The notes below the pieces were generated by a model. It saw nothing but the letters and a program-made list of their open reading frames with translations. It did no database searches and was not told the DNA's origin. From contig OZ296652.1 of NCBI GenBank assembly GCA_965655095.1, positions 63,240,001 through 63,304,000 of the forward strand: 64,000 nt of DNA. Direction: 5' to 3'. Made by a program: the position numbers and the translations under genes. Shown here one piece after another: positions 5,223 through 53,565 of this stretch. This DNA comes from Haplodiscus bocki. Its lineage: Eukaryota. Every line of letters begins with the position of its first letter. The stretch's first letter is position 1.

Positions 5223-5422
5223 NNNNNNNNNNNNNNNNNNNNNNNNNNNNNNNNNNNNNNNNNNNNNNNNNNNNNNNNNNNNNNNNNNNNNNNNNNNNNN
5301 NNNNNNNNNNNNNNNNNNNNNNNNNNNNNNNNNNNNNNNNNNNNNNNNNNNNNNNNNNNNNNNNNNNNNNNNNNNNNNNNNNNNNNNNNNNNNNNNNNNN
5401 NNNNNNNNNNNNNNNNNNNNNN
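5223..5422. other. Assembly gap (200 N)
   Basis: Run of N; it hides the start of the element B 5' LTR. Confidence 1.
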
Positions 5423-6723
5423 AATTGACAATGTCAATAAGTCTGACTGTAATTATAGAAGTTGACTTTACAAGTGAAGATTTGTTCCGCACGCGTTCCG
5501 TCGCTAGCAACCTGGTGAAGTCATTAGACTTTAATGCAATGCGTTGTGCTACCATACTGTATCACTTTTGCCAATCATGGAACGGTTCCCTAGCCATCCA
5601 TTTCATTCTTAGCGGTCGCGTTGCAACGAGCAGCGCTACAGGAGTCTAGGTGGCTGTTCCGGAACGCTCTGGCCTAAATGAGGAGCCAGCTAGTAGCAAT
5701 ATGGAATGAACTAGGGGAACGCTCAGTTTTGCTCCCGAAAGCGTATGTTAACGATGCAATAATATTTCAGACATGTAGTCATGACTTCTCCTTTTTTTAT
5801 TCTCTTATAATTTTCTTTTTTTTTGTTTAACATTACGGACTTTCTTTGATCCATTAAATCCTTTGATACATTAAATATACTACTGATTTTTGTGTCGAGG
5901 CGGGAATATGCACTTTGATGTCCATTTTTGACGGATTAGGCCCGTACTGGTTCGTCAAAAGATCGAGAAGACGAAGCCTATCAAGAGAAAGATGAATGCA
6001 GAGTTGTTTACTTCCAGCCAGAGCCGGCGTTTTTTTTCACATATTATGATATTATGATTGAAGTACTTTTTCCTTTTTGTATCCTGACTTAGCGTGTAAA
6101 CAACTATGTTTCCCGCCAAAGAAAAGGTGTAAATAGAAGAAACGAAAACACTATTTTATAATTTTCTGTACTGCGGTAACAATCGATCGTCTTTCATATC
6201 TCATTTCCCTATGGTTAAAACATTTTTTTTCTTAAAAGACAGAAAAATTACATCCGGTGAAAAATTCATTTCTAAATAAAACTATGTCAGTCCGCACAAC
6301 AAATGAGCTGTTTTCTCTTCCAAAGTTATGGCGATGCTAAGGAACAAGCGAAAGTTAGCAGCCGTTTCAAAGGAAAAAGCGGAAAGTGCTAGGAACAGCC
6401 AGTTGCAGAAAACGTTAATTCCGGGAATGACTGAAGAATACATCGCCCATGTTTGAGAAGGAATGGAAGGCAGTGTCACCCAAAAACTGACCAAGGAAAA
6501 AAATCACGTATTTTGGCTGCTCTGTCCAAACTTAACGAATAACTTCTGAACCCGCGAGTACGGACATGCTCTGAGACTGTTCCGGGAACATCCTGGAACC
6601 ATGACTCCGAAAACGGGGAACTCACTGGGGATCGTTCCCAGATTGATCCCTACACCGAAATGGAAACCTCTACTCGTCGAACCTGCATCTCAGCTGACTC
6701 ATACCTGGAGGAGAGCTCGCACA
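5423..6723 (+). repeat. Element B 5' LTR (5' end lost in gap)
   Basis: Shares blocks with 15124-16766 and 52600-53565, e.g. GCGGGAATAnnCACTTTGATGTCCA at ~5899, ~15956 and ~53451. Ends ...GCACA before TGGTGA at 6724. Confidence 0.7.
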
Positions 6724-7495
6724 TGGTGATACGAACTCAAGAACAGATTATCTATCGCCTCCACATGGTGACAGGAGCTCAAGAAAAGATTCCTTTTTGG
6801 TCCTCAGGGACTTCTTCAGGAAAACAAAAGAAGGCGCGCGCCACAATTCAGCTATAGTTTCGCCATCAGAACACCCCTGCGTCAATTGAAGCAAACCAAA
6901 ATTTGTTGGCTCTTCAACAATTTGCGAGCAACAGTAACTCAGCCATATTCAATAGGAAAACTAAAGGAATCTCAAAACTGCCCGAATCCCTTACAAAAAA
7001 ATGCCCACCTTCGACCGGAAGTCAGAAAAAAATGAACTGTTTGAAAATCTCTTCGAACCAAATTTTGAAAATTGACAACCAACTCACGGAAGAAGACAAA
7101 TAAAACTGTTTCCACTCTCTAATGCAGGGTGGTGCCTTGCAGGCGTTCCAAATTATCACCAGCCCAAGCAGAAATTTTGGCAGAAATTCTCACAGTGTTC
7201 CGTAGAAAACACGTAGAACCCCAGTCAATAGCTTCGGTGAAGTACAAATCTTAGCGTTTTGCTGTTTAATCTAGCGAACAAGAAGGTAACTGGTTAGTTG
7301 GTTGAAATACAGAAACTAGCAAAAGACGCATCCAGAATTGCGGCTCAGGCGACCATAAATTATTTCAGATATACCAAGATGCTTCCACAAGTGAAGAAAC
7401 CAATCAAGCAGTCTCTTTTGGAGAATGGCACATATGAACAGATTGTGTCGCATCCTGAACGTGATTTACAGTTGAAAAGTTTAAAGGATGACTGA
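6328..7495 (+). pseudogene. gag: Element B gag (decayed; starts inside the LTR)
   Basis: MAMLRNKRKLAAVSKE... through HMVIRTQEQ, HMVTGAQEK and ...ENGTYEQIVSHPERDLQL, with multiple stops and frameshifts. Homologous to element A Gag. Confidence 0.75.
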
Positions 7496-14624: not shown

Positions 14625-15194
14625 TTGCAGCGCCCACCAAGACATAACACCGCAGAAATTCCAAACTCAACGCAACTGTCTGGAACACTGACAGGAGAAA
14701 TACTAACCAATTTGTTCGTGGCATGTCTAGAACAGAAATTTGTAATGATTGAGTCAGACTCAATCGAACGGACAATCCCACTAACTCCCCATAGCCTAAA
14801 CGATTTGAATTGGCCACTGAACCCCTTCAATGCCATGACGCCAATATCACCGGCACTCAAAACTGAAACGCCAACATACCCTCCCGTATTCGAGCACAGC
14901 TCTATGTCTAAGGCACCCTCCGATAATTTCGATATCTCAACATCATTGATGAAGAGTGAGTACGGTGGAAGTATGGGAAGCATCTTCGGACCTGAAACAT
15001 TCGTTTCAGATAATCCACGAAGAACATCCATCGCATCGAGGAGGTATCACCACAAAACCGCAAACGCCGGGCAGACAGAAAAAAAACTGAGCCTGAGATT
15101 GTCTTTTCATACAAAAAGTGCAATGTCGCTGCACACCTGCGAAGCTTGCGGTCAACCCATGCCTGGAGTCAAGACTTCTCCGGACTCAGAATAA
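14625..15194 (+). CDS. Element B ORF3: Pro/Ser/Thr-rich protein ending in CxxC (HTCEACGQP) inside the 3' LTR
   Basis: 189-codon open frame at the same position and orientation as element A ORF3. Its last ~23 codons are in the LTR and are conserved in the sister LTR at 52600 (RHTCEACGEPLP). Confidence 0.5.
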   Translation: MQRPPRHNTAEIPNSTQLSGTLTGEILTNLFVACLEQKFVMIESDSIERTIPLTPHSLNDLNWPLNPFNAMTPISPALKTETPTYPPVFEHSSMSKAPSDNFDISTSLMKSEYGGSMGSIFGPETFVSDNPRRTSIASRRYHHKTANAGQTEKKLSLRLSFHTKSAMSLHTCEACGQPMPGVKTSPDSE

Positions 15195-16766
15195 AACTGA
15201 AGCTTTCCGATTGCATTTTAAGTTGAACACCTTTTATCATTTGTATTCAAGTTGCCCGTAAATTGACCCGTTGTGTATACGGATAACTCGTATGAACTGA
15301 TCAAGACTGGGACGGAAACTTTACGGAACAAACAATTATCAACCTAGTAGCTCATTGTGATTTGAAGGTTTCACATTTGTATTTATTTAATCAACATAAA
15401 GGTACTTTTCAATTAGAACAAGAGCTAAGTGCAGCAGTTTAATTAATATGACGCTGTCAATGATAAGTATTCACAGCAACTGTAGAAAAGCAAAAATGAC
15501 TCTAGGAGTGAAAAAGTGTTCCGTACGTGTTCCATCGCTATTAATCTGGTGAGGTCACAACAATGTTCACTCTAATTACCGTGCTACTATGCTTTCTTTT
15601 AAGGAATAATTTTGGAGTGGCTCCGTATCCATTCATTTTCACTTTCATAGGAGCACTGCTACTACCGGCGCTACAAGTGAACACAAAACAGTTTCAGAAA
15701 GGACTAGATGAAACAAGGAACGAACTGGTAGAAAGGAGGAGCAGACTAGGAACGTTTTTAGTTGCTGCCTAGTTCTACCTCAAATTTGCGCAGTAAGGTA
15801 ATATATATTCTCACCGTATGGGAACATGTAGAACTCAACTATTTTTTGTATTTTTTTTATTTTCACTGTAACATTTACCAGATGAAATATTTCAGTATTT
15901 TCCCATTATGGAGATCCACTGAATTTTTGTCTTTTACAAAATCTATTGTGATGGCGCGGGAATAAGCACTTTGATGTCCACCTCAGACAAATGAGGCCCG
16001 TACATTTTCTATCGAAATTTGGATAAGGTGCAGTGCAGCCTATGAGGGAAGAAATGGATGGAAAGTTGTTTATTCCCCGCCAGAGTCGGCCTTTTTCCTT
16101 CGTAAAAAGTATGGTTAAAGTACTTTTTCCTATTTTGTACCTTCAATTGGCGTGTGAACAATTATTTTTACCGCCAAGTGAAGGGTGTAAGGAGGAAAAA
16201 TGAAAGTAATAATGTTTAATATACATCTAACTGTACCGTTTGTGACTAGTCATACTTTGTGTTTATCATTAGGCTCGCCTCGTTTCTATTCGTGAAATTT
16301 TTGTGAAATCTCTCAAATTATTCAGCTTTCAATCGTATTCCACAAAATTTCCTTGAGAAATAGAAACCCTGAAAGACAAGAGAAAGTTGGCAGCAATTGC
16401 CAGAGATTGTTAGGAAGGACCTCTAGAAACAGTCACTCGCCGAACTCAGCCGTTTCCATAGTAAATGAGGAGTATATTACTCAAGTGTCGGAGGAAATAG
16501 AGCTTAGGTGACAAAGATTTTATCTCAGGAATTCAATAGAACTGAGAGCAGGTTTCTTGGTGCTCTGTCTAAACTTGACGAATTTCTTCCGAATCCACAA
16601 GTCCGGGTACAAACCGGAACCCGTCTAGTAACGTCCCGGAACATGAACGCAGGAAACCGGGAAAAAACTGGGGATTGTTCCCAGAACGATCCTCGTCCTG
16701 ATGTAGATGTCTCCGTTTGCCAGACCGCTTAACCCATGGACTTAGACCCAGACGAGACATACTAAA
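15124..16766 (+). repeat. Element B 3' LTR (~1.64 kb) containing a gag N-terminus copy
   Basis: Starts TGTCGC, like the element A LTRs and the 52600 copy. Contains KDKRKLAA...EEYITQVSEEIE...LGALSKLDEFL (~16370-16732), matching gag at 6328-6720. Homology stops where the first PBS-like site would follow. Confidence 0.75.
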
Positions 16767-34570: not shown

Positions 34571-37111
34571 TGCTTGCTTTGTATCGAACTTGATTTTGTC
34601 ACTCGTTTCAGTGATTTTTGTGAAGCAAAGATTTTGGTATACGATAGCTTGCGTTTTTGAACCAAAAACACTCCCACGTCTTTTGCTTTTTTTTGTTGCG
34701 GAAATCAGGTTTCTCGATTGGGTTAGCCCTTTTCTGCGTCAGTATTAAAATATACCGGCGTTTTTTTTCAGAGGAGATCGGCGTTAACCTTCAGTGAAAA
34801 ACCTTCAAAAAAAATTTATAAGTGCCATCAGCAAAATGGCAAATGACTAAAAGACCATTGTGCATATACATGAGCTAATAAACACAACACCAAGTAGATG
34901 TTTTCAAGAAAACTGACCATTCCTAACTAACATTCACTTAAATGACAGACAACAAAGGAAAAGTTACGTTCGAAATAAAGGGAACTCAATATGAACAGAC
35001 ATCAATTTTCATGCCAAAGAGATGCAAGACGATAAGACGATAAGACGATGTTACAGATATCGAATATCATCCTTCCAAATTAAAAGCGAGGAGGCCAAAA
35101 AACTGGTGTTGCCTCAATTTCATAAACATCCATTTTCGTTATTTTCTTAAAAATTGGAGAATTAATTGGAGAGCCAAATCAACAAACTTCTATTTTCATC
35201 CAATCTAGGATTAATACGTAGAATATTTCATTGGTTGAAAAGCAACTACTTTCAATACCCATGATACACATTGAGAATGCAATAGAGAACTAAATACTCA
35301 GAAAACGGAATTCATCACTGCGAGGCGAACTTAGAACCGACTAGCTCAGACAAATAGCAACACAGAATCAGAAAAGGGGTTAATTCCGATGCCCGAAAAG
35401 TTTCGCGAACTGGCAAATGTATTAAGGATGGGTTCATTATTAAAAGTGAAATTCATTCAAGAAATCCTTTCCTTATTGTAGAAAGCTTTTTAATTGTCGA
35501 TTAGCATGAAATTCCGAAAATTCAGAAAGCAGACATACTTTTACCCCAATTCAAATTTTAGCAGCGAATTTTGCGGTAAATTTTGTTGGAACTCATGTCA
35601 GCATGATGATTTTAACCTCCAGAGGCTGACTTCCCATAAATATCAACGATTAAAAAAAACTCTTGCATCTTATCTCACCACCTGTCAGGTGACCACGCAA
35701 ATCCGCGAACAGAAAATAAACTTGACGAAAGCAGAAAGCAAATCTTAACTCACAACTTGCGCACGCACAGTGTTGCAACTCTAGGTTGAATTTTTGAACT
35801 TTGTAAACTTTTAGACAATTAGAAGGTGCAAAATCATTATGTTCAATTAAACAACTTTTCATCACTTTGTATAAGTTTTTTCTAATACGTTACACTGAGA
35901 TGAACTGTGACGTACCTTAGCAGAAAATTTAGTGATTGGACCGATATTCGAGAATACCCTAATGAAATGGTGGAGAACCTAATCGACTAGACAGAACAGA
36001 ACAAAGAGTTTGCTCCTCTAACACAAAAACATGCTGCATGCCGATTTCCAGATAATGGCACACTTAGCCTGTACCAATCAACAATCAGCAGAAACGAGGA
36101 CGTTCTTGCAGGCGTTCGCATCTAGAGTGGCAAAACAAAGTTGTTCAACACCTTTTTCTTGCGGTTCTACATCGATGACGGGAACTCCGTAAAACAGTAA
36201 ATTAGTTTGACTAAAGTGAATCTTTGTATGGTAATGATATTTGAACGATACATCTGATTGCGTGTCGCAGGCTGCCGCCTGTGACGGCATGATCTACTCC
36301 GTTAATTACAACGGGCAGAACTCAGTCATACAGGGCTACGCTCTGCCCTTAATTGAAGACTAATATAATAGAACTATCCTTTAATAAACCATTGGATAAA
36401 AACCCCCACCATTTTGAAGTTATATTCTTATACATACTTATATACTAATATATAAATATATATAAAATCTTACAAATATTTATGTACTTATGCGCAAAAT
36501 CCATACAAATATCGAAGAAGCTTGTATCATGAAGGAAAGGTCATAGACAAATGTTTACAATGCGCAACTTATCTGCAGTCTTATACTCAAATTTGATTGG
36601 TCAAAGGCAAGTAATCGTATCAACTGCTGACCAACCAAAAGCGCTGCTAGAACCTGGTCAAAATTGGTCACTGGGACCTAATTTTGACCATTTTGCTCAA
36701 AGCGAGTGGTCGTTTTCAAACAAAAGGCGAAATACGGCCAAATGAAATCAGAAAGCCAATGTATGAACAGACATAATTAAAAAATATTGCTATATACTTA
36801 TATAAACATATAATTATGTGATTATGTGATATAAAATCATTTAGTGCTAATAATTATTAAATCCTGAGTGAGAAATATCATCTGGTCAAAAGACGGTCAT
36901 AGTGCCCACTTTTGACCACTACATATTAACCTACAGTTAAAACCTGTGCAAGAAGCTTAATACCAATATTCTTGCCATATTTAGCATATTATAACTATAT
37001 TTAACCATCCATTATATGAAGCATGCATGTAAACATGATTTTAATATCCCTGAACATTTATCCAGTTTCCATGACCATATTTTTGGTGGTCATGGTTTTG
37101 CGGCATATATT

Positions 37112-37270
37112 CTTTGATGTTGTTTATATTACTATTTTTAAAACTGACGTCATGATGATGAAATATATATTCCGGGCTAAACCTCTTTAATGTTGTTTAT
37201 ATTACTATTTTTAAAACTGATGTCATGATGATGAAATACATAGTTCGGGTTGAACCCCCTTTGATGTTTA
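37112..37270. repeat. ~73-bp tandem duplication inside the LTR (also present in the 3' LTR)
   Basis: CTTTrATGTTGTTTATATTACTATTTTTAAAACTGAyGTCATGATGATGAAATA... starts at 37112 and 37185, with a partial third start at 37259. Confidence 0.9.
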
Positions 37271-37322
37271 ATATACATAGAACCCGAGGACATGACGTCA
37301 AAGAAGTGGTCCTCCCAATTGG
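37145..37322 (+). promoter_or_regulatory. Candidate LTR promoter: CRE-like TGACGTCA sites and a palindromic CCAAT box
   Basis: TGACGTCA at 37145-37152 and 37293-37300; CCAATTGG at 37315-37322, ~260 bp upstream of the gag ATG. Function is inferred. Confidence 0.45.
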
Positions 37323-38249
37323 CTGGCGAAGATGAAGGAAAAGAGACGAATCTGAAGGAGAAATCATCAGAGGAGGATATTCGATCCTGAAAAACAGTTC
37401 ACTATTGAGGAGAAGAAAAACTGCCCTCCTAAAAAACAGTCGATTAGAATACTCTTTGAAACTGACATTATTCTTTGTCCCTGTTAAAATCCTTTACAAA
37501 TTTTTAATTTGAAGTATTATTTCACTTTTGTGTCACTATTAATTTTCGCTGCTATTACAATTCAGTTATTAAAACAAACATGGTTTCTACTCGTAAGAAA
37601 AGACAGTCAAACAAAAGACTCCTCAACCAATTAGATGACTTCGATCAGGATGTGATAATTGGCAACACTGCAAGCGAGAGACAAGAAAACGTTGTGGTCA
37701 ATGAGGGTAATAATGACCAGGATTTTACCGTTGGTACTTCTAATGTTAGTTCGATTATCAATGAAAATGTGTTGAATGTGAAAACTTTAGAAAGGTGTTT
37801 TAATGAAAGAATTGATAGGGAAATGGAAAATATTGTTGAAACAGTTGAAGATAGGATACAGAGTGCAATTTTGACCGCCATCGATAACATTGTTGGTCCT
37901 AAAATTGACTTAGCGATCAGGTCAATAAATGCATCCTCTGGACGGGATGTGGCTAGTATGTCTGCAAACTCAGAACGTAGGGAGCATACGGGAATCAATG
38001 CCTCTTTTGAAAACGCATCTGAAAACAACAACACATTAGGTGTAACAAATATAAATGATGAGGCTCGACGCAACTCCCAAGACGCGGTAAGTGAATTGTC
38101 GGTCCCGGGAACACAATTTGACCGACAATCACACATTCATCACGTGGTGACAGGAGTTGAAGAACGCCACACCATGCTGGCAGGAGGTTCAGAACAGATT
38201 TATAACCCTCATCACATGATGACAAAACCTAGTAACGAGACTCATCACA

Positions 38250-38260
38250 TGGTGACAGGA
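38250..38260 (+). promoter_or_regulatory. Primer-binding site TGGTGACAGGA
   Basis: Immediately follows the 5' LTR terminal CA and is complementary to a tRNA ending ...UCCUGUCACCA. Leu-like by my recollection of acceptor stems; identity not verified. Confidence 0.85.
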
Positions 38261-39385
38261 CAAAAAGCCCAAACAAGTCAATTCCCCGAGTTTCTTACTG
38301 GGCGCATTAAAACACCACGCAACCCATCATTTCATCAATACCAGAACCTGTCAACACAAGTATCACAAGACAACAATTTACCAGTGGTCGAACAAACACC
38401 AACAAATCAAAACTTAGAAGCAAACAACTCCATTAACCGTCTAGCTGACGCAATCGCTGGAATTACCACCCAACAACGACAACAAGCAGCCACAATGCTC
38501 AAACCAGCATCCACCAATACATTAATCTTCGATGGCAAAAATGAGAAATTCGAACTCTTTGAAGACCTATTTCACACAATGCTCAAGATGCAACCAGAGA
38601 TGACAGAAGCCATGAAAATTAACCATTTTCACGCTGATTTACGCAAAGAAGCACTTCAAACATTCAGAAATATCAGTGCAGTAAACAGGAAAACTCTCGA
38701 TGACGTGCTAATTGTGTTCAGATGCAAATATGTCAAACCCGAATCAGAAGCTACAGCTAAACACAAATGGCACAAGCTCACATTCGATCTCAATACAAAA
38801 TCACTTCCTGACTTCATAGAAGAGCTCAATGAATGTGCCGAAAGAGCGTTCGGTGACAACGCCCAACACATGATTGACAGCTTACTATACGCAAAACTAC
38901 CACCCCATTCAAAACGATCACTCAACGTAGCCTATTTGGAGAATGGCACGTACGACCAAATAGTTGCACACCTTGAAAGAGAATTATAACTCAGTGGCTT
39001 AGAAAACGATGGGGAGCTGACAATACCTACAATGACAGCCGTTCCCCCAAATGATAATCAACAAAACAACGAACAAACAAAAGTGGTATGCCACTATTGT
39101 AAAAAGCCAAGCCACGTAATCCGAGAGTGCCGCAAAAGGATGAGAAAAGAACAGGAGCAAAGAAATGATCCCTCAACCCACAAGATGAAACCTTCAACAT
39201 CTAAATCATACGCACCATGTCCTCATTGTCAAAGAATAAATCAACCTAGAACAGTGTTGGAGTGGTCCCAATGCCGCTAAAAGACCCAAACGGTTCAAAC
39301 AGACATATCCAGAAGACAACCGAAATGATGGGCAAGACCAAGGAACTTTGACCCAATCAGGACCTTCATCAATCCTTAAAAACTC

Positions 39386-39392: not shown

Positions 39393-42300
39393 TAAAAAAG
39401 CCACGACTCCAATGGGCAGATTACACATCAGTCGGACAAAATGTCATATCTGACCCACCTCCAATAGTATTTCACTCTCATCAAACACTAAACACAGGAA
39501 TTCCATCAGTTGTCTGGCAGCAACAAATGGAAAAAGCCTACATTCGAAGATATAATAACATGCATATCATTCATAAAACACTTCCAACATATGAATTTGA
39601 CTACACAGACAACTTCGACACTCACTTCAGACCCCTTCCAGAAGTCTTTGCATACGACCCATACTTCGTTGACCCTCAATATGGATTTGACCCCTCTTGG
39701 GCTGAAGAAATATATGATCAAGACAAATTGGAGTACAAAGATACTTACAATAAACCTAATGATCAGATCGAATCTGATGATTTGATTACGGATGCACATG
39801 TATCAGACGCACTACGATACGCAGTGATAGATTTATGGACAGTCAATCCACAGTTACCTGATACATCACCCTTACCAAACTTTCGACCGAGACCACAGAA
39901 CCAACAAAGGCAAATAGCAGTCATCGACGACCAAATTTTAACACAGCTCCAGGTAAAGCCAGACGGACTCACAAGGTTTCTCCTGCTCTCAACAAATTCG
40001 CCACTGAAAAATAAGCGAAAAATGCTTTACTTTCCAATGGATTTCGGGGAGTTAAAAATTGATGGCCCCATAGATACGGGTGCTTTGTCAAACGCCATTT
40101 CGGAAGCCGACTTACGCAAAATTCGATTACTGGCTCCACATACGATATTAAATGAGGGCCCACCACCTGAGTTCCAAATTATGGTTGCCAATGGACAGTT
40201 AGAAGCACCTATTGCAACAGTAGAATTGCAATTCGAAGTCGGTGACATTACGTTCAGAGAAAAGTTCATAGTTATGACAAATCTTACAAGCTCTTTGATC
40301 GGTGTCTTATTCCTACAACGCAACAGTACCATACTCGAGATGCGTCAAGGATTTCTGAACTTTCCTTTCTTTTCAATGCAATTGAAAAATGAAGACCGGA
40401 CATACCCAAATGTCATTGAACCCATAATAAACCCAGTAGACACCATTCTACAACCGAGAAAACGAACCACAATTTGGGTAAAATCACAGATTTACACAGA
40501 AAACGAAGCGACAGGAATAATTTAACCTTCGCCACTTTTGGAGACCGATGAAGATCTCCTTATTTGTCCGGCAATTTCGTCAACCCAAAATAATAAACAT
40601 ATTGTCCAAATTAGCAATTTTCTAGACCATCCTTACACTCTCATGAAAGAAACACATATGGCAAATTTCTCCACTTTGACTCCTCAACAAACAAAGCACA
40701 TTCGACCAGTCAATCCTACCTCAGTGAGACACCTCCTGAATAACAATCACGATGATGCCATCCATTACATAAATAGCCTTCTGAAAACATCGAAACCTGA
40801 CGAAGTCAATAAGACCTACTGGTTTCCAACGCCGCAAAATCCGGGCAATGAAAAGGAACATACGCCCATTCAGACACGCATTCTCAATGAATTACGAGAA
40901 CTAGAACAATTAGAAAAATTAAACCCACTGGAAAATATCGACTCCCGAAACCAATTCCTATCCAATTTCGATTGGACAGACTCTACTTTACAATCGGATG
41001 CGAAACAAGCAGTTGAAAATCTGCTCGTGGAACTTCATGACATCTTTGCACGACACCGTTTTGACATCGGAATCAATACAGAGTTCAAAGTACAACTCAC
41101 ACCATTAGACAATAGGCCTGCTTATAGCCGGAGCCTTCCAGCGCCGATAAATCTCAAAGATGATATCCTTGTGGAACTAGCTCTATTACACAAGTATGGT
41201 ATCATCACAACACTACCCTTTAGCAAATACGCTAGTCCAATATTTGCACAGAGGAAACCAGATGGGAAACTACGCCTATTAGTTGACCTTCGGAAAATAA
41301 ACACACTAATAGCAGATGATTACATAAACAACAACCATCCAGTCAGTACATTAGCGGATGCAGCACAACATATGGCTGGAAAAAATCTGTTCTGCAAACT
41401 TGATTGTCCCCAATTATACCACTGCCTCCAAATGGCCGACCAACAATCAATTGAACTCCTTGCATTCAACTTTGCAAGTAAAACATTCGCGTACCGAAGA
41501 CTGGCACAAGGACTTAGCCGTTCCCTATCGGCATTTTCGAGCTTCATACGTAAATACCTCGACCCAGTCAGCAAAGCCGATCAGTGTGCACAATATGTTG
41601 ACGATATTGGCATAGCCGCCAATACACCTGACCAATTAATCAAAAAGCTCCAGTGCCTAAGGGAAGCTGGCCTCAAACTCAGCATGACCAAATGCCATTT
41701 CGGAGTACAAGAAGTAGATTTCCTTGGACGAACAATAACAACCAAAGGGGTTGCCCCTCAAAAACAAAAGATTGCTAAATTCCTTGAAAAAGTCAGATTT
41801 CCAAGGTCCAAAGAAGCACTTCAACGATACATTGGATTCCTGAACTATTACCGAAATTACATACCTAGATTAGCAGAAGGACTCACGCCGTTCTTCCAAC
41901 TACTCAAAACAACTGATGCCAAAACCAAAAATCAGATTACCCCTGACATCATGAAAGACTTCAGGGAAATAAACGAAGCTTTAGACCGATGCTGCCAGCT
42001 AGCATTACGTCAACCATTAACTGGTAAACAATTGGTACTAATGACTGACGCAAGCTTCCAAGCAGCTGGTTACGCAGTGTTAATAGAAGACGACCCAAAC
42101 CAAAAATACACTTCAACACGCAAAACTTATGCACCTATAGCTTACGGCTCAAAAACATATTGACCATCCCAAATCAAAATGTCCATCTACGCAAAAGAAT
42201 TTTTAGCCATTTATATGGCCTTCAAAGAATTTGGACATATATGTTGGGGTGCCACTAAACCAGTGATTATCATGACAGATAGCAAATCTGTCACCAGATT

Positions 42301-44560
42301 CTTTCAAACAAAAATGATCCCTCCACCGTTATGGAATGCCTGCGACTCCGTATTACAATTCAATTTCACTATCGCAGACATTCCAGGGAAAATGAACACC
42401 GCAGCAGATTTTTTATCTCTATTGGAAATGGATCCAAATGAAAAAGTCATTCTAAAAATCAGAGAAGACATTCCAACAAAACCAATTGAAGTAAACATCG
42501 AATCTACAGGCATTGCACAAGAAGAACCGGTCTTCTTTGATCCTACAGACCCACAAGAGACCACAGAAAAAGAACTTTGGAAACGTAAGGACGGGGTACG
42601 AAACGCCATGCCCAAGGAACCACCACTCATTACAGTGTCATGTTATTACGCAAATGACCTACACAAAGACACAACAATTGTGAATATAGCACATTTGACG
42701 AAACCATCACGTATACTTATCGAACAAGATTCAGACACAACACTACTTAATTTTAAACGCGAAATGTTGGGATTACCATTCGACGAACAAATTCTATTAA
42801 ACGATGCACGCTACATGCATTATTCCAGAAACAAAAAGCGTATTATCATCAAGGATGATATTCTCTACCGACAGTACTACAACGACATTGGTGAAGTCAG
42901 TCACTTACAGGTCCTTCTGCCCGGACAATTACTTAAAGTCTTATTACAATCATTACATGGAACAGCTGGCAAACACCCAAGAATTTCAAAAATGATGCAA
43001 GAAATCCGCCAAAAGTATTACTTCCCTTCAATTGCACCTTACGTCAAAAACTGGGTTCGTGACTGTGAAATATGCATCCACGATAAACGCATAAATAACA
43101 CACGAATTACTCCAGAATTAATCCACATCCAAGAATGGGATCTCGGACCGGAAGATCTTATGCAAATTGACTTATTGCCAGAATTACCGCCAAGTGGGGG
43201 TTACGAAAACATCATTACCGCAATAGATGTATTTTCAAGATACGCATTTGCCTATCCAGTATCTTAGCCCACGGCAGTAAACACAGCCAAAGTCATCATA
43301 GACATTATGAGAAGACATGCTTATCTACCCACCCTCATTATAACAGACAAAGGAAGCGCTTTCGTCTCCCAAGTTATACATGAGCTTGCTGAAATATTGG
43401 GCATCAATTTGAAACACGCCACAACGAAACATGCACAAACTATCGGAGTCCTAGAACGAGCCCATGCCACAATCAAGACCTCTTTGAAAATGGCATCAGG
43501 CGAATACAGGAAGCAATGGCACAAATATTTACCCATTGCAATCCTGAATTACAACACGACATACCATTCCAGTATCGATTGTGAACCAAGCCGAGTATTC
43601 CACGGCAGAGTTCCACACAACATTTTAGATCACAAACTTGGATTACGATTTAATCCCAATATTGCACCCACTACAGATTTTGCGGAAGAATTACTGCGAA
43701 GAACCAAGATCCTATATGACAGAACCAAGAAAAATGTCATGCAGTCATATATCAAATACAAAAGATATTATGACAAAAAAGCAAAAGCCTCACCTTTAAA
43801 AGAAAAAGATTATTGTTTTATACTTCAGCCGAAAGCGGACCACCAAGGGTCAAAAATACCGTTCCGTGACTTCCGACGGATTGGTCCCTACATCGTAGAA
43901 AAAGAACTACCAAATAACAATTACATTGTGCGAAAACTTAACACAAACAAAACCCAAATTCTACACAGAATTCGTCTTCGAAAATACAACCCCGAAAAAC
44001 CTTCTGAAGATAATTATTCAGAAGCACAATGGCAAACCGACGACAATATTGTTGTCCCACAGGATGATTTATATACAATTGCATGGGAAGCGGAATTTGG
44101 CGGACACCTATTTGACATTCCTATCATATATACCGATCCCAACGCAATTGACTTCGATGACAGTCACACACAGGGACCTGATACAGTAATTGTCCCACGC
44201 TCCTATTATCAAGATTCAAGAGATGGTCAAAACAGGGAAACTTGCCCCATTTCTGACCCATCAGTACCGCGAACTTTAACACCTACATCGAATGGTCAAA
44301 ATCAGGACATTGAGACCAGTACTGACCTAACTCAAAATGATAACGCCAAATATGTATCTGAGTCAAGTACCGACGCTGAAATTACATGTAAACCTGTCAC
44401 ACAACCACCATCAATACAGAGTGACACTTTTCCAACACTTGACATCAACAATCCTACAGCTGAAAATACTCCCAAAAAGGAATCTAACTCTTCTAGAGGC
44501 GGGAAATACAATCTACGCCCCAATCTCAATCCTATTTACTCAGAGATATACAGATATTGA
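39386..44560 (+). pseudogene. pol: Element A pol: protease, RT, RNase H, integrase in one frame with three in-frame stops
   Basis: PR IDTGA; RT LRLLVDLR and QYVDD; RH MTDAS, AKEFLAI, MTDSK, AADFLS; IN H..GKH...CEIC, QIDL, ITDKG, VLERAH, GPY. ORF pieces 39527, 40538, 42179 and 43307 share one frame, separated by TAA 40523, TGA 42161 and TAG 43265. Confidence 0.95.
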
Positions 44561-44578: not shown

Positions 44579-46030
44579 CTAGCCCCTTTTTGTGTGTCAT
44601 TTTTGCTCTTCATTGTTATTTTCTGCACACACATCCTTTACTTCTTTTCTTTTTACCTTTTTGGGGCATATACAAAATTACCAAGAACGACAACAAAGCC
44701 AAATTCACTCAATAGAGAAACAACAAGAAACTAATCAACAACTACAACAGCTTTAAGTAAGAGACAAGACGACTCAGTATTCGAAGTTTTGCGTTTGATC
44801 GCAACTTCCCAGCCAGCAAATCAGCCACTCCACGATGATGAGTTTTACTGATATCAAAACGTGGACGCTGTGCAGGACGACGACGTTGTTCTGGTAGTCT
44901 CTCTGAGACAAACACTGGTTCACTCAAGGATGCAGAAGACTCTACATCACTAGCAATCCTCACTGCCTTGTACGATTTCTCCAACTCAGTTCGAATTTTC
45001 TCGTACCCATGACAATCGACAAATTCCCAAGGATTGTACCACACTGAAGCGCACTATCACCAAAAGTCTCGGGCAACTCCATACACGACGAAATGGACTC
45101 CGGATCAGTGAAATAGTTTCCCTCAGCATCACTGCTCAACAGATACCCCTGTAGCGGCTCTAAAATCGCAGACAGGTCAACACTGGTCACTCCAACTTTG
45201 CTCGAGCCAAGCGAAACATCAGGCAATTTCGGGGCAACATGACCCAAACAGAGACAACTCAATTTAAATACATCCCACGTATACCCTCCACGTGACAATT
45301 CGGGGCACGATGACAGGAAAGAGACCATGTCCTCAACACATGGCCCAACACCCAACTCGTCTAGATAGACATGCCTCACATCGTCTACAAACTCTATGTA
45401 ACCGTCAATGTGCACGTTCCGCAACTCCCGTGCAACCCAACCCCGGGAACTAAAGCTCTGAAACAAGTGCTGGTAACAGTCAACAGCAACAGTCTTCGGC
45501 AATTTGAATAAGACTCCATAGTCGAAGCAAGCCAAGCCAATCACCAGGTCTGACTTGAATGTGGGGTGTTTCACTAACTCCTTAGCCACATATTTAATGT
45601 ATTGTCTGCCCTGGTCAATGAAGGGATTGAATGACTCCCCCATCACCGTCTTCGCCACAGTATCAGACCTTGCCTTCTTCCCACGCTCACGCTCCACATC
45701 GTATTTCGACTTGGCGACCTTCAACACTTTGGACCGAAGTTATGTTTTCTGCATAAATTCAGGGATGCCCACTAGCTCGCTTACAGCAAAGTCGAAAGAT
45801 CGCAACGCATCCCAATCCCATTCAGATGGCAGACAACTCCGAGACACGATTCTTCGTAGCAGACGATGCAAGAAATCGCACATTTGGCTGCACAAGAAAA
45901 ACCCTTGGTCACGACTGGGCACAAGTGACCGCTTGAAGGCCTCCCTATACTCTTGAACAATGAGTTTGAACAACTCCAGACGAGCTTCAAAATAGGGATC
46001 TCCAGTGACATGACTATCAAACGCTTGGCC

Positions 46031-46092
46031 CTACAACACAAACCAATTAAAACTTTATTACTTACATGCAATTACACGCAAACTATACCCAC
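46031..46092 (-). other. Intron 3 of antisense gene (62 nt, phase 0)
   Basis: AGG|GTGGGT...TGTGTTGTAG|GGC joins ...HVEGR to GQAFDSHVTGDPYFEARLELFKLIV, in frame with ORF 45740-45973. Confidence 0.7.
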
Positions 46093-46227
46093 CCTTCCCT
46101 CCACATGCTGAAACTCTTGACGCTGACTGGTGCTGCTGATGTACGTCACAATTTGAGGCCAATGAGCAATCATTTCCTGCACCACAAGAAACGCAGTAGA
46201 CAACTCTGATTTCCCATCTTCCAGGGC

Positions 46228-46299
46228 CTGCAAACGAACAATTATCACTCAACAAACATACTACTCAGACAATTACGGGGCACCACTACCAATACGTAC
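46228..46299 (-). other. Intron 2 of antisense gene (72 nt, phase 0)
   Basis: ATG|GTACGT...TCGTTTGCAG|GCC joins ...YFRM to ALEDGKSEL... and removes a stop. Confidence 0.75.
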
Positions 46300-46785
46300 C
46301 ATCCTGAAGTACTGTGTTGACTGCACCCAGCGTTCATCCAGAAGTCCATTCAAACGCAACAGGAGAGAACGCAGCATCGAACACATGTCAATCCTCCCCA
46401 TCACACTGAAGCTGGGTTTGTGCAACAAACGTTCAAATTGCACAGGTGTCAACGAAAATGGGTACTGAACACCCGCCTTCCGACCAGGTCTTTCATCGAG
46501 AACTTTCACAAAGTCGCCACTTGAACCGCCACAGCATATGATTGTTGCGTCACCCGAAATGGCACTCATTAATCGCGAAACAAGATCAATATAGCTTTTT
46601 GTGGGTGGAACATCTCTACCACAATGCAACATAGGCAGGCACAGGAAACGCTTGCCCTCCCAAAAACAAAGACTCAAAGTTCTGCGACGTGAATCCGCAA
46701 AAAATTCAATAGAATATGCCCCCTCACGAGCAATAACAGATGACACATGTTTCACCAGCTCCAGAAACAGATGATGCAGCAATCC

Positions 46786-46971
46786 CTGAAACATCACAAA
46801 TTACATGACACCCAACCATCAATTTCCACCCTACTCCCTCCTGTCAAATGCAAAGCTTCCCAACGACTTCTAACTCTACATGTAGTACACACCCGACAGA
46901 CTCTTGACCCATGGAAAACTACAGCACTATTACCCAGTTATAACCATAACAAAATCTGCTCAGATACGTAC
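46786..46971 (-). other. Intron 1 of antisense gene (186 nt, phase 0)
   Basis: TCT|GTACGT...TGTTTCAG|GGA joins ...SCIS to GLLHH... in frame and removes a stop. Confidence 0.8.
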
Positions 46972-49652
46972 AGAAATGCAGCTCAAACTCCAATTGAAGT
47001 CAGCGGTGCTCGCAGAATGACCCGTCAACACTCCCACCTGGGTCCAGTACTCCTCCAACGTCCACAATTGGCCTCCTCCTCGCAAAAAAATTAACAACAA
47101 CTCAATTTGAATCAGAGTCCGTGAACTTGCTGAGGTAAAAGTAAAGGGCTTCCCTTCAACAACATCATAATAAAACGGACGTTCGTGATCCAACTCAGGC
47201 ACATCCAGATGCATGAACAGCTCCTTCTCAGCTTCCAACTTGGACCCATACAGCGTACGCCCATCTGAACCACGCATCTTAGAAGGATGGTACCGGGCAC
47301 GAAATCTCTTATCTGCCGTCAAATGATGCTCCCGTTGGAAGTGGCGCTTCAGTTCATATAATCCCCGAGATCTCATGGACACGTTCCTCCTACAAAGCAT
47401 GCAGTAGAAGCAATGACGATTCTTCAACGGATTTTCTGGACCAGTAGCAAAAATTTTCGCAAACGGAGCGAGCTCCAGCATCTCCTCGGTGAAAACATAT
47501 CCACCACCATCCGACCCACTGGGTGAAATTGGGTTCGGCAGGCCTTTTCGTGACCACTTGTACAACTGACATTTTTCCCGAGCATCAGAACGAATCTGGC
47601 CAAGAGTTTTTAAGCTATCAGTATCATTAAACTCGTTCACTTCCGTTCGCAAGAAACCCAAGGCTGCATCTGCTTGTCGACTGGAACATGGTTGCTGTGA
47701 AAGATCACCCACCAAACGATCACTATCAAATGACTCCGTAATCGTTGGCAAAGAATAAAAAGATCGCGAAGCCACACTCTCCATGACAGTAGACCCTGAC
47801 CTACTGCGCGAAGCAGACTGCTCACTACCCTTCTCACCGACGTTTCTCCCAGTCTTTCCGCCAATCTTCAAAAGAACATCCTCCAACATCCCAAAAGTGG
47901 CCAAAGAAACTTCCAATCCGACGGCCTCAGCAAATTATATCATTTGATCCGAACTCATTCCGGTCACTTGCTGACGAGGATCCAATTGCACAGGAGGATT
48001 ATCAGCAAAACACTCTTTCAATAGGGTCCTTGCAGACTCACTTGGGTAATACTTCGAACGCCCAGCACCCAAACCCGGCTGCACTGTAGCTCCGGAAACA
48101 GCTGGAAGATCTGATTCTGCAACTTCAAAAACCCTCCCCCCACTCAAACTACCAACTCGTCTTCGTGCAATTGACTCCAACTCCGATGTACCATACTCCG
48201 TGTCATCCGGTCGGGAACTACTCGGGAACGACTGCCCAGCATCTGACACACCAACCATAGTATATCTATCACAAAATGATTTCCCACCCGAGTCATCAAC
48301 TTCAAATGCCACACTCTTTGAAGGCCGCTCATCTGCCACGCCAAACTCCACATCACACAATGACCGCTTGCTTCCAACACCAATCTTCTTTCCTCCCAAC
48401 TCTGCACGCAAAATCTCATCCACCTGACTCCTGGCAAAATTTGTTGTCAGCAGTTACCACACCACTCCCTGTATTAACGCGATCAACCAAATTTGAATCC
48501 AAGAATTCAAGCACTTCAGCAGGATCAACCTCCGCATTATTCTCTATTCCATCACCCCCGAGCGATTCAAGCTTATCTCGCAAAAACTTCTCCAGTCCTT
48601 CACTTCCTTCGTCACTACTCGACAATAGACACTCCTGACTGCCAGCAGCTAAACTCTCTTTATTCACATTCCCGCGTTCTTCACTTATGGTCTTTTCACC
48701 ACCTGTGACTTGCAACACTGCCAAATTTTTCGTTGGAGAAGTCTCTGTTTCCTCAATCACCACGATTTCTACTTCGCTTCTCTGGGGAAGGTCTGGGTAG
48801 TTCTCAGTTCCTTCGGTGTTGTGGTGTTTCGGCTCGTTGGATTCGTTCTCTAAACAATTGAAGCTGATAAATTTACGTGGCAACTCGCCAGCATATTCGC
48901 CCATTTCGAAACCGGATATCCGTAAAGAGGAAACACGTGTTCGTTCAAACTTAAATCTATCACGTGTTATCCTAGCAGTGAAGAGAGAAAAAGTGCTCTG
49001 GCCAAGCAATCAAATTGCCATCACTCATCAAGTAGTTCTTGATTCGACATATTCCAACATAACAAAAAGTATCAAAAAACCCAACACTCACCCATTTGTT
49101 AACAGCGACGAAACTTCTTGATTCTCTGTAGAAACCGGCTCCTCCTCCAATTGGCTCGAACACAAGTTGACAGAATTCCAAAACAAGTCCAAAACAAGCG
49201 GTACACAATCAATAAACAATTTAATCACAATTCGAAAACAAGATAATCAAATGCAATAACAATTCAAAATTAAACATTTTCAAAAGATGAGAGAGTCGTG
49301 GCTGTACAATATGGATTTTGCCACACTATGGTCATTATTGACACGATATTTACCTATCTAACATTATCTACATATTTACTATTTGGGTCAACTTCTGCCA
49401 GAGTTGCCCAACATTTGACCTTCGGAATTTCCATCTTTACATTTTCATCAAATCTTTATTCATTTTCTTTAATTCTCATTCACCCTATCACGCCTCACGC
49501 TCATTGGCTCTCACCATTACAAAAGGTGAGCTTACACTCATCAAAGTGAAGTGCCGCTTCAGCTTCACTAGCACGGTCACTTACGGTTATTGATGACCAC
49601 TTGAAATTCAAGAGTCAATACAACAATGAAATAAATCACTTAAAATCAAAAC

Positions 49653-50644
49653 ATGATTTCCTTTAACCTAACCGCATTAACCCAACCAACTCTCTCAATC
49701 CAACGAAAGTCAGAAACCCGCCATATTTTCCCCAGGAAAACCTTTCAGAATTTTACCCAACTTTCATTTACAGTTTCAATCTTCAACAAAAACAGTCGCT
49801 TCGCTTTAACACTTAGTTTCTTCAATCACGGCACTAAAGCATTTCAAGAAAAAGCCTTCGCAGATATGACCACCACATTCTGCATAGAAGAAGATGAAGA
49901 ACCCATGGCAACGGAGCCGATATACCTCTCGAGCGATGAGAGCGGATATTCAACACCCAATACAACTCCAGATCACCAGCTTGAATGCATTTATCCCGAT
50001 TCGATCACCCAGTTTATAGCCTCACAATTGGAACAACGGTCAAATATGGGCGCAGAGACCATCGTCTACCCACCAACACCAAACACGTCTACAATCTCTG
50101 ACGACGAAGACCCAATGAACCCCACTCCAATAATTGGAAACCCTGATCAATATACGCCTCAGATCCCACCCAGACGCCATCACCCAATACAACTTTGCCA
50201 ACAAGTGCAACCTATCCCAGACACGCCGCAATCTCCAACCCCGGAATATCTTGGGCAGTCAAACAATTTCTATCCCGACAATATCCCATTACACAACCCC
50301 CCAATATCGTAGCAGTAGCGGACGAATTGCGCAACCTAACATTACACCCTCATCCGCACCGTAACGGAACGGTTACAAGTTGTTTGGTATGTGGCAAATC
50401 GTACGACCAGGTGATCGAAGAGACTGTTGCCGACTACCTCGATCAGACATCACAACCGGGTGAGACAGTGCGGGAACGACAGATCAAGAGAAATGCATTC
50501 ATTGAAGGCGTTCAGAGCGGAGTCTTCATTTTATCCCCCCGGGAGTGTCGCAGGCTGCGGCCTGTGAAGGCATGATCCACTCCGTTAATTACAACGGGCA
50601 GAACTCAGTCACAGGGCTACGCTCTGCCCTTAATTGAAGACTAA
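49653..50644 (+). pseudogene. Element A ORF3: acidic/Pro-rich protein with HxH...CxxC; C-terminus encoded in the LTR
   Basis: ORFs 49653-50312 and 50195-50575 join by one extra C in a C-run at ~50300. A second 1-nt shift near 50530 leads into VSQAAACDGMIYSVNYNGQNSVIQGYALPLIED*, which is intact in the 5' LTR copy (36262-36363). Alternative start at ATG 49866. Confidence 0.65.
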
Positions 50645-52530
50645 TATAATAGAACTATCCTTTAATAAACCATTGGATAAAAACCCCCACCATTTTGAAG
50701 TTATATTCTTATACATACTTATATACTAATATATAAATATATATAAAATCTTACAAATATTTATGTACTTATGCGCAAAATCCATACAAATATCGAAGAA
50801 GCTTGTATCATGAAGGAAAGGTCATAGACAAATGTTTACAATGCGCAACTTATCTGCAGTCTTATACTCAAATTTGATTGGTCAAAGGCAAGTAATCGTA
50901 TCAACTGCTGACCAACCAAAAGCGCTGCTAGAACCTGGTCAAAATTGGTCACTGGGACCTAATTTTGACCATTTTGCTCAAAGCGAGTGGTCGTTTTCAA
51001 ACAAAAGGCGAAATACGGCCAAATGAAATCAGAAAGCCAATGTATGAACAGACATAATTAAAAAATATTGCTATATACTTATATAAACATATAATTATCT
51101 GAATATGTGATATAAAATCATTTAGTGCTAATAATTATTAAATCCTGAGTGAGAAATATCATCTGGTCAAAAGACGGTCATAGTGCCCTCTTTTGACCAC
51201 TACATATTAACCTACAGTTAAAACCTGTGCAAGAAACTTAATACCAATACTCTTGCCATATTTAGCATATTAAAACTATATTTAACCATCCATTATATGA
51301 AACACGCATGTAAACATGATTTTAATATCCCTGAACATTTATCCAGTTTCCATGACCATATTTTTGGTGGTCATGGTTTTGCGGCATATATTCTTTGATG
51401 TTGTTTATATTACTATTTTTAAAACTGACGTCATGATGATGAAATATATATTCCGGGCTAAACCTCTTTAATGTTGTTTATATTACTATTTTTAAAACTG
51501 ATGTCATGATGATGAAATACATAGTTCGGGTTGAACCCCCTTTGATGTTTAATATAAATAGAACCCGAGGACATGACGTCAAAGAAGTGGTCCTCCCAAT
51601 TGGCTGGCGAAGATGAAGGAAAAGAGACGAATCTGAAGGAGAAATCATCAGAGGAGGATATTCGATCCTGAAAAACAGTTCACTATTGAGGAGAAGAAAA
51701 ACTGCCCTCCTAAAAAACAGTCGATTATAATACTCTTTGAAACTGACATTATTCTTTGTCCCTGTTAAAATCCTTTACAAATTTTTAATTTGAAGTATTA
51801 TTTCACTTTTGTGTCACTATTAATTTTCGCTGCTATTACAATTCAGTTATTAAAACAAACATGGTTTCTACTCGTAAGAAAAGACAGTCAAACAAAAGAC
51901 TCCTCAACCAATTAGATGACTTCGATCAGGATGTGATAATTGGCAACACTGCAAGCGAGAGACAAGAAAACGTTGTGGTCAATGAGGGTAATAATGACCA
52001 GGATTTTACCGTTGGTACTTCTAATGTTAGTTCGATTATCAATGAAAATGTGTTGAATGTGAAAACTTTAGAAAGGTGTTTTAATGAAAGAATTGATAGG
52101 GAAATGGAAAATATTGTTGAAACAGTTGAAGATAGGATACAGAGTGCAATTTTGACCGCCATCGATAACATTGTTGGTCCTAAAATTGACTTAGCGATCA
52201 GGTCAATAAATGCATCCTCTGGACGGGATGTGGCTAGTATGTCTGCAAACTCAGAACGTAGGGAGCATACGGGAATCAATGCCTCTTTTGAAAACGCATC
52301 TGAAAACAACAACACATTAGGTGTAACAAATATAAATGATGAGGCTCGACGCAACTCCCAAGACGCGGTAAGTGAATTGTCGGTCCCGGGAACACAATTT
52401 GACCGACAATCACACATTCATCACGTGGTCACAGGAGTTAAAGAACGCCACACCATGCTGGCAGGAGGTTCAGAACAGATTTATAACCCTCATCACATGA
52501 TGACAAAACCTAGTAACGAGACCCATCACA
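50546..52530 (+). repeat. Element A 3' LTR (1,985 bp)
   Basis: Near-identical to 36263-38249; followed directly by the TSD TTGCG. Confidence 0.97.
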
Positions 52531-52538
52531 TTGCGTAA
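51861..52538 (+). CDS. LTR-encoded copy of the Gag N-terminus (225 aa), terminating in flanking DNA
   Basis: Identical to Gag residues 1-223 except E/K at one site; reads through the LTR end and TSD to a TAA at 52536-52538. Expression is unknown. Confidence 0.6.
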   Translation: MVSTRKKRQSNKRLLNQLDDFDQDVIIGNTASERQENVVVNEGNNDQDFTVGTSNVSSIINENVLNVKTLERCFNERIDREMENIVETVEDRIQSAILTAIDNIVGPKIDLAIRSINASSGRDVASMSANSERREHTGINASFENASENNNTLGVTNINDEARRNSQDAVSELSVPGTQFDRQSHIHHVVTGVKERHTMLAGGSEQIYNPHHMMTKPSNETHHIA

Positions 52539-52599: not shown

Positions 52600-53565
52600 T
52601 GTCGCGACACACTTGCGAAGCCTGCGGTGAACCCCTCCCTGAAGAAAAGACACCGTAAGACTCAGAATGAGACTGAAGTTTTCAAATTATTTTAAAAACA
52701 CTTATCTTAATTCGCGTTCAAATTACATGTAAATTGATCAGTATCATATAGGGATCACCGTAGTGAACTGATCCAGGCTGGGACGGAACCGTTACGGAAC
52801 AAACGGATATTCACATACCTTTCAAACATCTGCTGTTTTTATATATTTTTTCTTTAATACAAATCCACCTTCTAAGTTTAAATTGACTTGACTGGCTGTA
52901 GGAAGTGCTGAATTCCACTTTATGTACTTTATGTGCAGTTTATAAGACTAGAGCTAAATAACAGTTGTAGTTTAAACAGCTTGAAAGACTCTAGGATTGA
53001 AAATTTCTTCCGTACGTTATCCACCGTTACTAACCTGGTGATGCCACAATCATTCCGAGCACTAAGCTGTGCTGTAATGCTATACTAAAGACGGAATGAA
53101 TCGGCGTTTGCTCCTTCTTTACGCTCAGTTTGACTGACCTGACTGCCACTACTTACGAATGCGGAGATGATTCGGAGCACATTAGTTGCTACTCGCCTGA
53201 TTAAGGAGTAAACTAGTAGTGCTACTAGTTTCTCCTCATTTTTGAAGACAAATCATAATGAACTAAGTAATTTGAACGAATGTTGATTTGGACATGAAAT
53301 ACCATGGTTATTTTATTTAATTAGTATCATTTCTAATTTTCTCTAAATGTTGCCTGAATCTAGTTTAAAAATTCATTTCCCCACTTGGAGAATTATTCAA
53401 TTTTGTCCTCTAAGAATGGCCCAAAATTTTTTTGTGAATATTATGTCGGCGCGGGAATAAACACTTTGATGTCCATTTCCGACAGATTAAGTCCGTACGT
53501 TTTCTGTCATGAGATAGAGAAGACGCATCCCATGAGGGGAGAAATGGATGGAACGGTGTTTATTG
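52600..53565 (+). repeat. 3'-truncated LTR of the element B subfamily
   Basis: TGTCGCGACACACTTGCGAAGCCTGCGG... is collinear with 15124-16070 (shared GACTCAGAAT, GAACTGATC...CTGGGACGGAA, GACTCTAGGA, GCGCGGGAATAA.CACTTTGATGTCCA). Confidence 0.8.

Follow-up and report, generated by a model that had tools for sequence, protein, structure and literature searches.

Tandem primer-binding sites inside gag and a variable LTR boundary in a family of Ty3/gypsy-type retrotransposons

The analysed window is a 64,000-nucleotide stretch of Haplodiscus bocki DNA (contig OZ296652.1 of assembly GCA_965655095.1, positions 63,240,001 to 63,304,000), and it contains a young 16.3-kb LTR retrotransposon, designated element A. 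A self-comparison of the window revealed direct repeats at 36262-38250 and 50545-52531 with 99.1% identity, and reading of the ends placed the LTRs at 36263-38249 and 50546-52530, flanked on both sides by the 5-bp target duplication TTGCG. Pfam searches identified protease, RT, RNase H and integrase in that order in four ORF pieces, together with a weak DUF1759 match in the first ORF, indicating a Ty3/gypsy-type element. The same domain order appears in precomputed hits retrieved for other copies. The features of element A, and of a second element designated B, are as follows.

36258-36262: 5' copy of the target-site duplication TTGCG, with the same 5 bases at 52531-52535.
36263-38249, plus strand: 5' LTR of element A (1987 nt, TGT...ACA ends).
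37580-38989, plus strand: gag ORF (469 aa, shorter than the 595-633 aa of intact relatives), which starts inside the LTR, so that 670 nt, or 223 codons, are LTR sequence.
38138-38167, plus strand: relic unit 1 (30 nt, HHVVTG-VEER), with the PBS 11-mer intact but CG where the LTR-terminal CA should be.
38168-38209, plus strand: relic unit 2 (42 nt, HTMLAG-GSEQIYNP, 13 of 18 bases), with TGC instead of TGG, of the same unit type as the HDMLTE/HNILTG units of other lineages.
38210-38242, plus strand: relic unit 3 (33 nt, HHMMTK-PSNET), with TGA instead of TGG.
38243-38249, plus strand: last 7 bases of the LTR (CATCACA), the first half of the active junction (unit 4, HHMVTG).
38250-38260, plus strand: active primer-binding site (PBS) TGGTGACAGGA, read as (M)VTG in gag.
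39527-44560, plus strand: pol region in four ORF pieces (protease, RT, RNase H, integrase); relatives have longer ORFs.
50541-50545, plus strand: short purine run GGGAG before the 3' LTR, a candidate plus-strand primer site whose function is inferred.
50546-52530, plus strand: 3' LTR, carrying the three relic units and a 225-codon gag N-terminal ORF (51861-52538) that runs into flanking DNA, and ending in CATCACA at 52524-52530.
52531-52535: 3' copy of the target-site duplication TTGCG.
6717-6776, plus strand: two junction-like units 42 nt apart in element B, which belongs to a different, decayed family; the second has the intact PBS 11-mer.

The initial annotation described four related units in the gag frame, spaced by 30, 42 and 33 nt, and regarded the last as the true boundary between LTR and PBS. 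Both statements are confirmed. Unit 4 is split by the LTR end, with CATCACA closing the LTR and TGGTGACAGGA following it. The 18-mer of unit 4, allowing up to 3 mismatches, occurs 6 times in the window against 0.06 expected from shuffles. Relic unit 1 of the 5' LTR keeps a perfect PBS 11-mer (38145-38155) that may still bind the primer tRNA unproductively, whereas its copy in the 3' LTR (52419-52448) differs by one base. Regarding element B, the two units have TGG at 6724 and 6766 and the family shares the same 11-mer, suggesting that the layout is older than family A. The further claim that the 3' LTR of element B stops at its first unit fits an alignment but is weak, because the two LTR-like regions are only 72-77% identical and no target duplication was found. 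B-like LTR and internal fragments (52600-53564, compared with 15124-16074 and 5884-6147) lie directly 3' of element A, which sits beside or inside another old element of B's family. The LTR of element A also contains an 85-nt tandem duplication, 88% identical (37111-37268, and 51392-51549 in the 3' LTR), which is present in a related copy (L003) as well, and a run of 200 N occupies 5223-5422.

A word search with Gag found 2097 relatives, all from ENA contigs, and every locus fetched came from a single assembly, ERZ26859043 (L numbers denote loci and P numbers denote proteins below). Intact Gags are 595-633 aa or more and carry a CCHC knuckle (zf-CCHC). The stretch between the conserved FDRQ and QTAQTNQFPEF motifs is a variable array. 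A loose unit pattern gives 0 to 6 units per protein in the first 120 hits, in which exact HHMVTG occurs 0-4 times per protein, and arrays reach nine or more units in P0249, P0254, P0241 and P0281. Unit types of 14, 10 and 11 codons recur, and intact versions of the 33-nt type occur in L009, a copy with four perfect units. Recent duplications copy blocks that begin at a perfect unit (P0023, P0087, P0097, P0241, P0249, P0254 and P0281).

Four more complete elements were obtained by looking up a Gag and then a mid-element gene. The LTR pairs of the five full elements are 98.4-99.7% identical, with 5-bp target duplications (that of L002 is imperfect, 4 of 5), and each LTR ends in CATCACA followed directly by the same 11-mer. 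GGGAG is present before the 3' LTR in all five. Relative to gag, however, the LTR end sits at different units, as listed below.

Element A: 3 relic units inside the LTR, 0 units downstream of the boundary.
L002: 1 relic unit inside the LTR, 1 unit (decayed) downstream, not perfect.
L003/L004: 2 relic units inside the LTR, 2 units downstream, of which 1 is perfect.
L007: 0 relic units inside the LTR, 2 units downstream, of which 1 is perfect.
L008: 1 relic unit inside the LTR, 4 units downstream, of which 2 are perfect.

The gag sequence inside the LTR ranges from 565 to 670 nt. In addition, three solo LTRs with matching target duplications (L011, L058 and L010) hold 3, 4 and 5 relic units, so that the eight LTR ends checked at the DNA level with target duplications hold 0, 1, 1, 2, 3, 3, 4 or 5. 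L003, L007, L008 and L009 carry 2, 2, 3 and 4 intact junctions, respectively. A block of antisense ORFs without Pfam matches lies between pol and the 3' LTR in all full copies (window 44960-49009, minus strand; L007 11587-15786, with ORFs of 425, 154 and 728 aa in L007), which is unusual for a gypsy-type element. As to the surroundings of other copies, a tandem repeat with a period of about 1 kb (72-92% between copies) flanks the element in L002 (1-3628), a gene with a double-jelly-roll-like domain (PF21738) that may be part of a virus-like or Polinton-like element lies upstream of the solo LTR in L011 (1-116), and a LINE-like ORF (endonuclease plus RT) lies next to the solo LTR in L010 (2828-5695).

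The idea that the units arose by replication slippage in the host genome after insertion, and say nothing about reverse transcription, draws on the facts that short tandem repeats do change by slippage and that unit numbers differ between copies. This is very unlikely, because the 5' and 3' LTRs carry the same relic units in all five full elements and array types are shared by many copies of a lineage (member counts up to 55-56), so that arrays are inherited through transposition.

Searches with LTR-borne gag fragments returned the ORFs of 3' and solo LTRs, which follow Gag and then break off after His-His into unrelated residues. As BLASTP alignments against Gags ran into the unrelated tails, the ends were located by a k-mer pass and a hand count, and the counts are therefore approximate. 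About 110 such ORFs were counted, and in all but one of those with a readable end, the first unrelated residue has a codon beginning with A, as expected if each stops at the final A of the motif. The ends fall at eight or more positions in the array. The 79 ORFs from the first LTR search have 0, 1, 2, 3, 4 or 5 relic units in 12, 25, 21, 16, 4 and 1 cases, and the 31 from the last search have one unit (30 cases) or two (1 case). Same-contig pairs of Gag and LTR ORFs (P0043/P0185, P0033/P0198 and P0069/P0207) place the boundary at the first perfect unit, with more perfect units after it.

An alternative view is that the array is a protein repeat kept for a Gag function, such as a His-rich linker or binding motif, and that the PBS merely overlaps one copy, with incidental boundary differences. 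In its favor, all spacings are multiples of three, the ORF stays open through the array, and the last unit before the conserved QTAQTNQFPEF stretch is HHMVTG in most Gags even where it is not the boundary. In contrast, active-looking lineages have anything from one unit to nine or more, the abundant 595-aa lineage has a degenerate last unit (HYTVTG) and 98.4% identical LTRs, and relic units change residues freely. Moreover, every LTR end falls exactly at the CA|TGG point of a unit, which a protein-level repeat does not predict, and this view is considered improbable.

In every case but one, the boundary is the 5'-most unit that has both the CA tip and the full 11-mer, although part of this rule holds by definition, since an intact in-LTR unit that was used would become the boundary. 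Of 19 in-LTR relic units read as DNA, 5 keep the TGG that pairs with the tRNA CCA end and 1 is fully intact, whereas 7 of 9 downstream units keep TGG and 4 are fully intact. The exception is L010 (P0169), a solo LTR with target duplication ATCAT that contains a perfect junction 130 nt before its end, suggesting indirectly that a downstream start can occur, if rarely, while an upstream unit is intact. The last search, built to favor such cases in the abundant lineage with three perfect units, found none among 31 new LTR ends. It could be argued from L010 that any intact unit primes with similar probability in each cycle, in both directions, as both sites may often be used in engineered two-PBS retroviral vectors, and that the apparent 5'-most rule comes from sampling or from later steps such as loss of the interval after dual initiation. 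This appears unlikely, because about 109 of about 110 LTR ends lack an intact upstream unit, although 54 of the 120 full Gags listed carry two to four perfect units.

According to the established logic of reverse transcription, the U5 part of a 3' LTR is copied from the RNA upstream of the primer, and a junction-like unit can therefore be inside both LTRs only if priming took place downstream of it. Relic junctions inside LTRs thus record outward moves of the boundary. The same unit types lie inside the LTR in some lineages and at or beyond the boundary in others; for example, the in-LTR block HHVVTG-VKER-HTMLAG of element A (units 1-2) matches the boundary block HHMVTG-VKER-HDMLTE of L008 (boundary unit and first downstream unit). 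Phylogenetic analysis of the N-terminal parts with FastTree indicated at least 16 changes in in-LTR unit number, and the P0198, P0201 and P0145 group is a supported clade with 1, 2 and 4 relic units. As this tree is weakly supported and unrooted and elements may recombine, gains and losses cannot be separated.

Regarding the primer, scans of the window and of L001-L008 found no tRNA gene, and the assignment rests on environmental DNA. The 11-mer is complementary to ..TCCTGTCA-CCA. A structured pattern for a tRNA with acceptor GACAGGA...TCCTGTCA found 46 metagenome loci, of which about 34 by hand count are tRNA-Leu genes with several anticodons, and their ends would pair with 11-13 nt of the active units, making a Leu tRNA the likely, though inferred, primer. 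Dense arrays of 44-45 tRNA genes within 5-7 kb were found in metagenome contigs (L020, L036 and L050). The possibility that the spacers are read-through copies of the tRNA body was rejected, because pairing with the environmental Leu tRNA ends stops after 12-13 nt and the spacer, examined by eye, does not fold back into a T-arm pattern. Priming from an internal tRNA segment such as the Asp anticodon loop appears unlikely, as only 8 nt match and the TGG is not explained.

Taken together, these data support the proposal of the initial annotation that duplication of the junction and priming from a downstream copy move the LTR end outward, since unit number and LTR boundary both vary widely across the family. 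Three refinements apply: the array is also a store of spare units downstream of the active one and not only a record of past growth; growth mostly follows loss of the active unit; and the number of steps and their direction along the tree are not resolved. In the explanation that is favored with good, though not complete, confidence, the 18-base junction (CATCACA plus TGGTGACAGGA, read as His-His-Met-Val-Thr-Gly) has been duplicated in tandem with 4-8 spacer codons, always in frame, giving a coding minisatellite of 1 to 9 or more units. Reverse transcription starts at one unit, almost always the 5'-most with both the CA needed at an LTR tip and the full PBS, and that choice fixes the 3' end of the LTR in the progeny, although start sites are inferred from integrated copies, which are filtered by integration. 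When the active unit is disabled by loss of the CA or the TGG, the next intact unit takes over, and the LTR lengthens by 30-130 nt, carrying the dead junction and some gag codons with it. The order of these events is inferred, as is the duplication mechanism, which is probably template switching or mis-annealing between identical units during reverse transcription. More tentatively, the array may be a selected back-up system, in which spare primer sites made by the element's own reverse transcription protect the lineage against loss of its PBS or LTR tip and coding sequence is ratcheted into the LTR as a side effect; this would be a general route by which LTRs grow and capture internal sequence.

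LTR ends are usually treated as fixed landmarks set by a single primer site. This family provides many natural replicates in which the landmark has moved with the old positions still readable, and offers a concrete mechanism for how LTRs lengthen and take in internal, even coding, sequence. It also warns annotation pipelines that a PBS-like motif inside an LTR, or several after it, need not be an error. In addition, the thousands of LTR-borne gag fragments in this genome are called as genes.

Literature searches for natural multiple or tandem PBSs in retrotransposons found no described array of this kind, and the closest precedents are Ty1 and engineered vectors. In Ty1 of Saccharomyces cerevisiae (Ty1/copia), the short PBS lies inside the GAG ORF (PMC4974528), and GAG also appears to start in the 5' LTR, a layout shared by the present family. 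However, Ty1 has one PBS plus separate boxes that pair with other tRNA parts instead of a tandem array of whole junctions, its primer is tRNAiMet, and its integrase seems to be placed before RT, whereas the integrase domains of element A follow RT and RNase H. Engineered retroviral vectors with two PBSs (Voronin and Pathak, J Virol 2004, cited in PMC3902901) likewise have more than one PBS on one RNA, and the choice of site probably changes what ends up in the LTR or is lost. Those vectors are artificial, with two sites that presumably lie far apart in non-coding sequence, while the sites described here, to which those primer-choice experiments are an engineered counterpart, are natural, up to nine or more, 30-42 nt apart, inside a coding frame, and evolving. 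Ordinary Ty3/gypsy (Metaviridae) elements share the TG..CA ends, the 5-bp target duplication, a PBS (inferred here) starting with TGG next to the 5' LTR, the PR-RT-RH-IN order, and a CCHC Gag, found here in relatives. In those elements gag usually starts after the PBS and the LTR is non-coding, whereas here about 190-225 gag codons are in the LTR, the PBS is translated, and antisense ORFs follow pol. Coding minisatellites share in-frame units whose number varies between copies, with recent block duplications, but each unit here appears to be a functional cis-element for reverse transcription, and the unit in use defines a structural boundary of the element.
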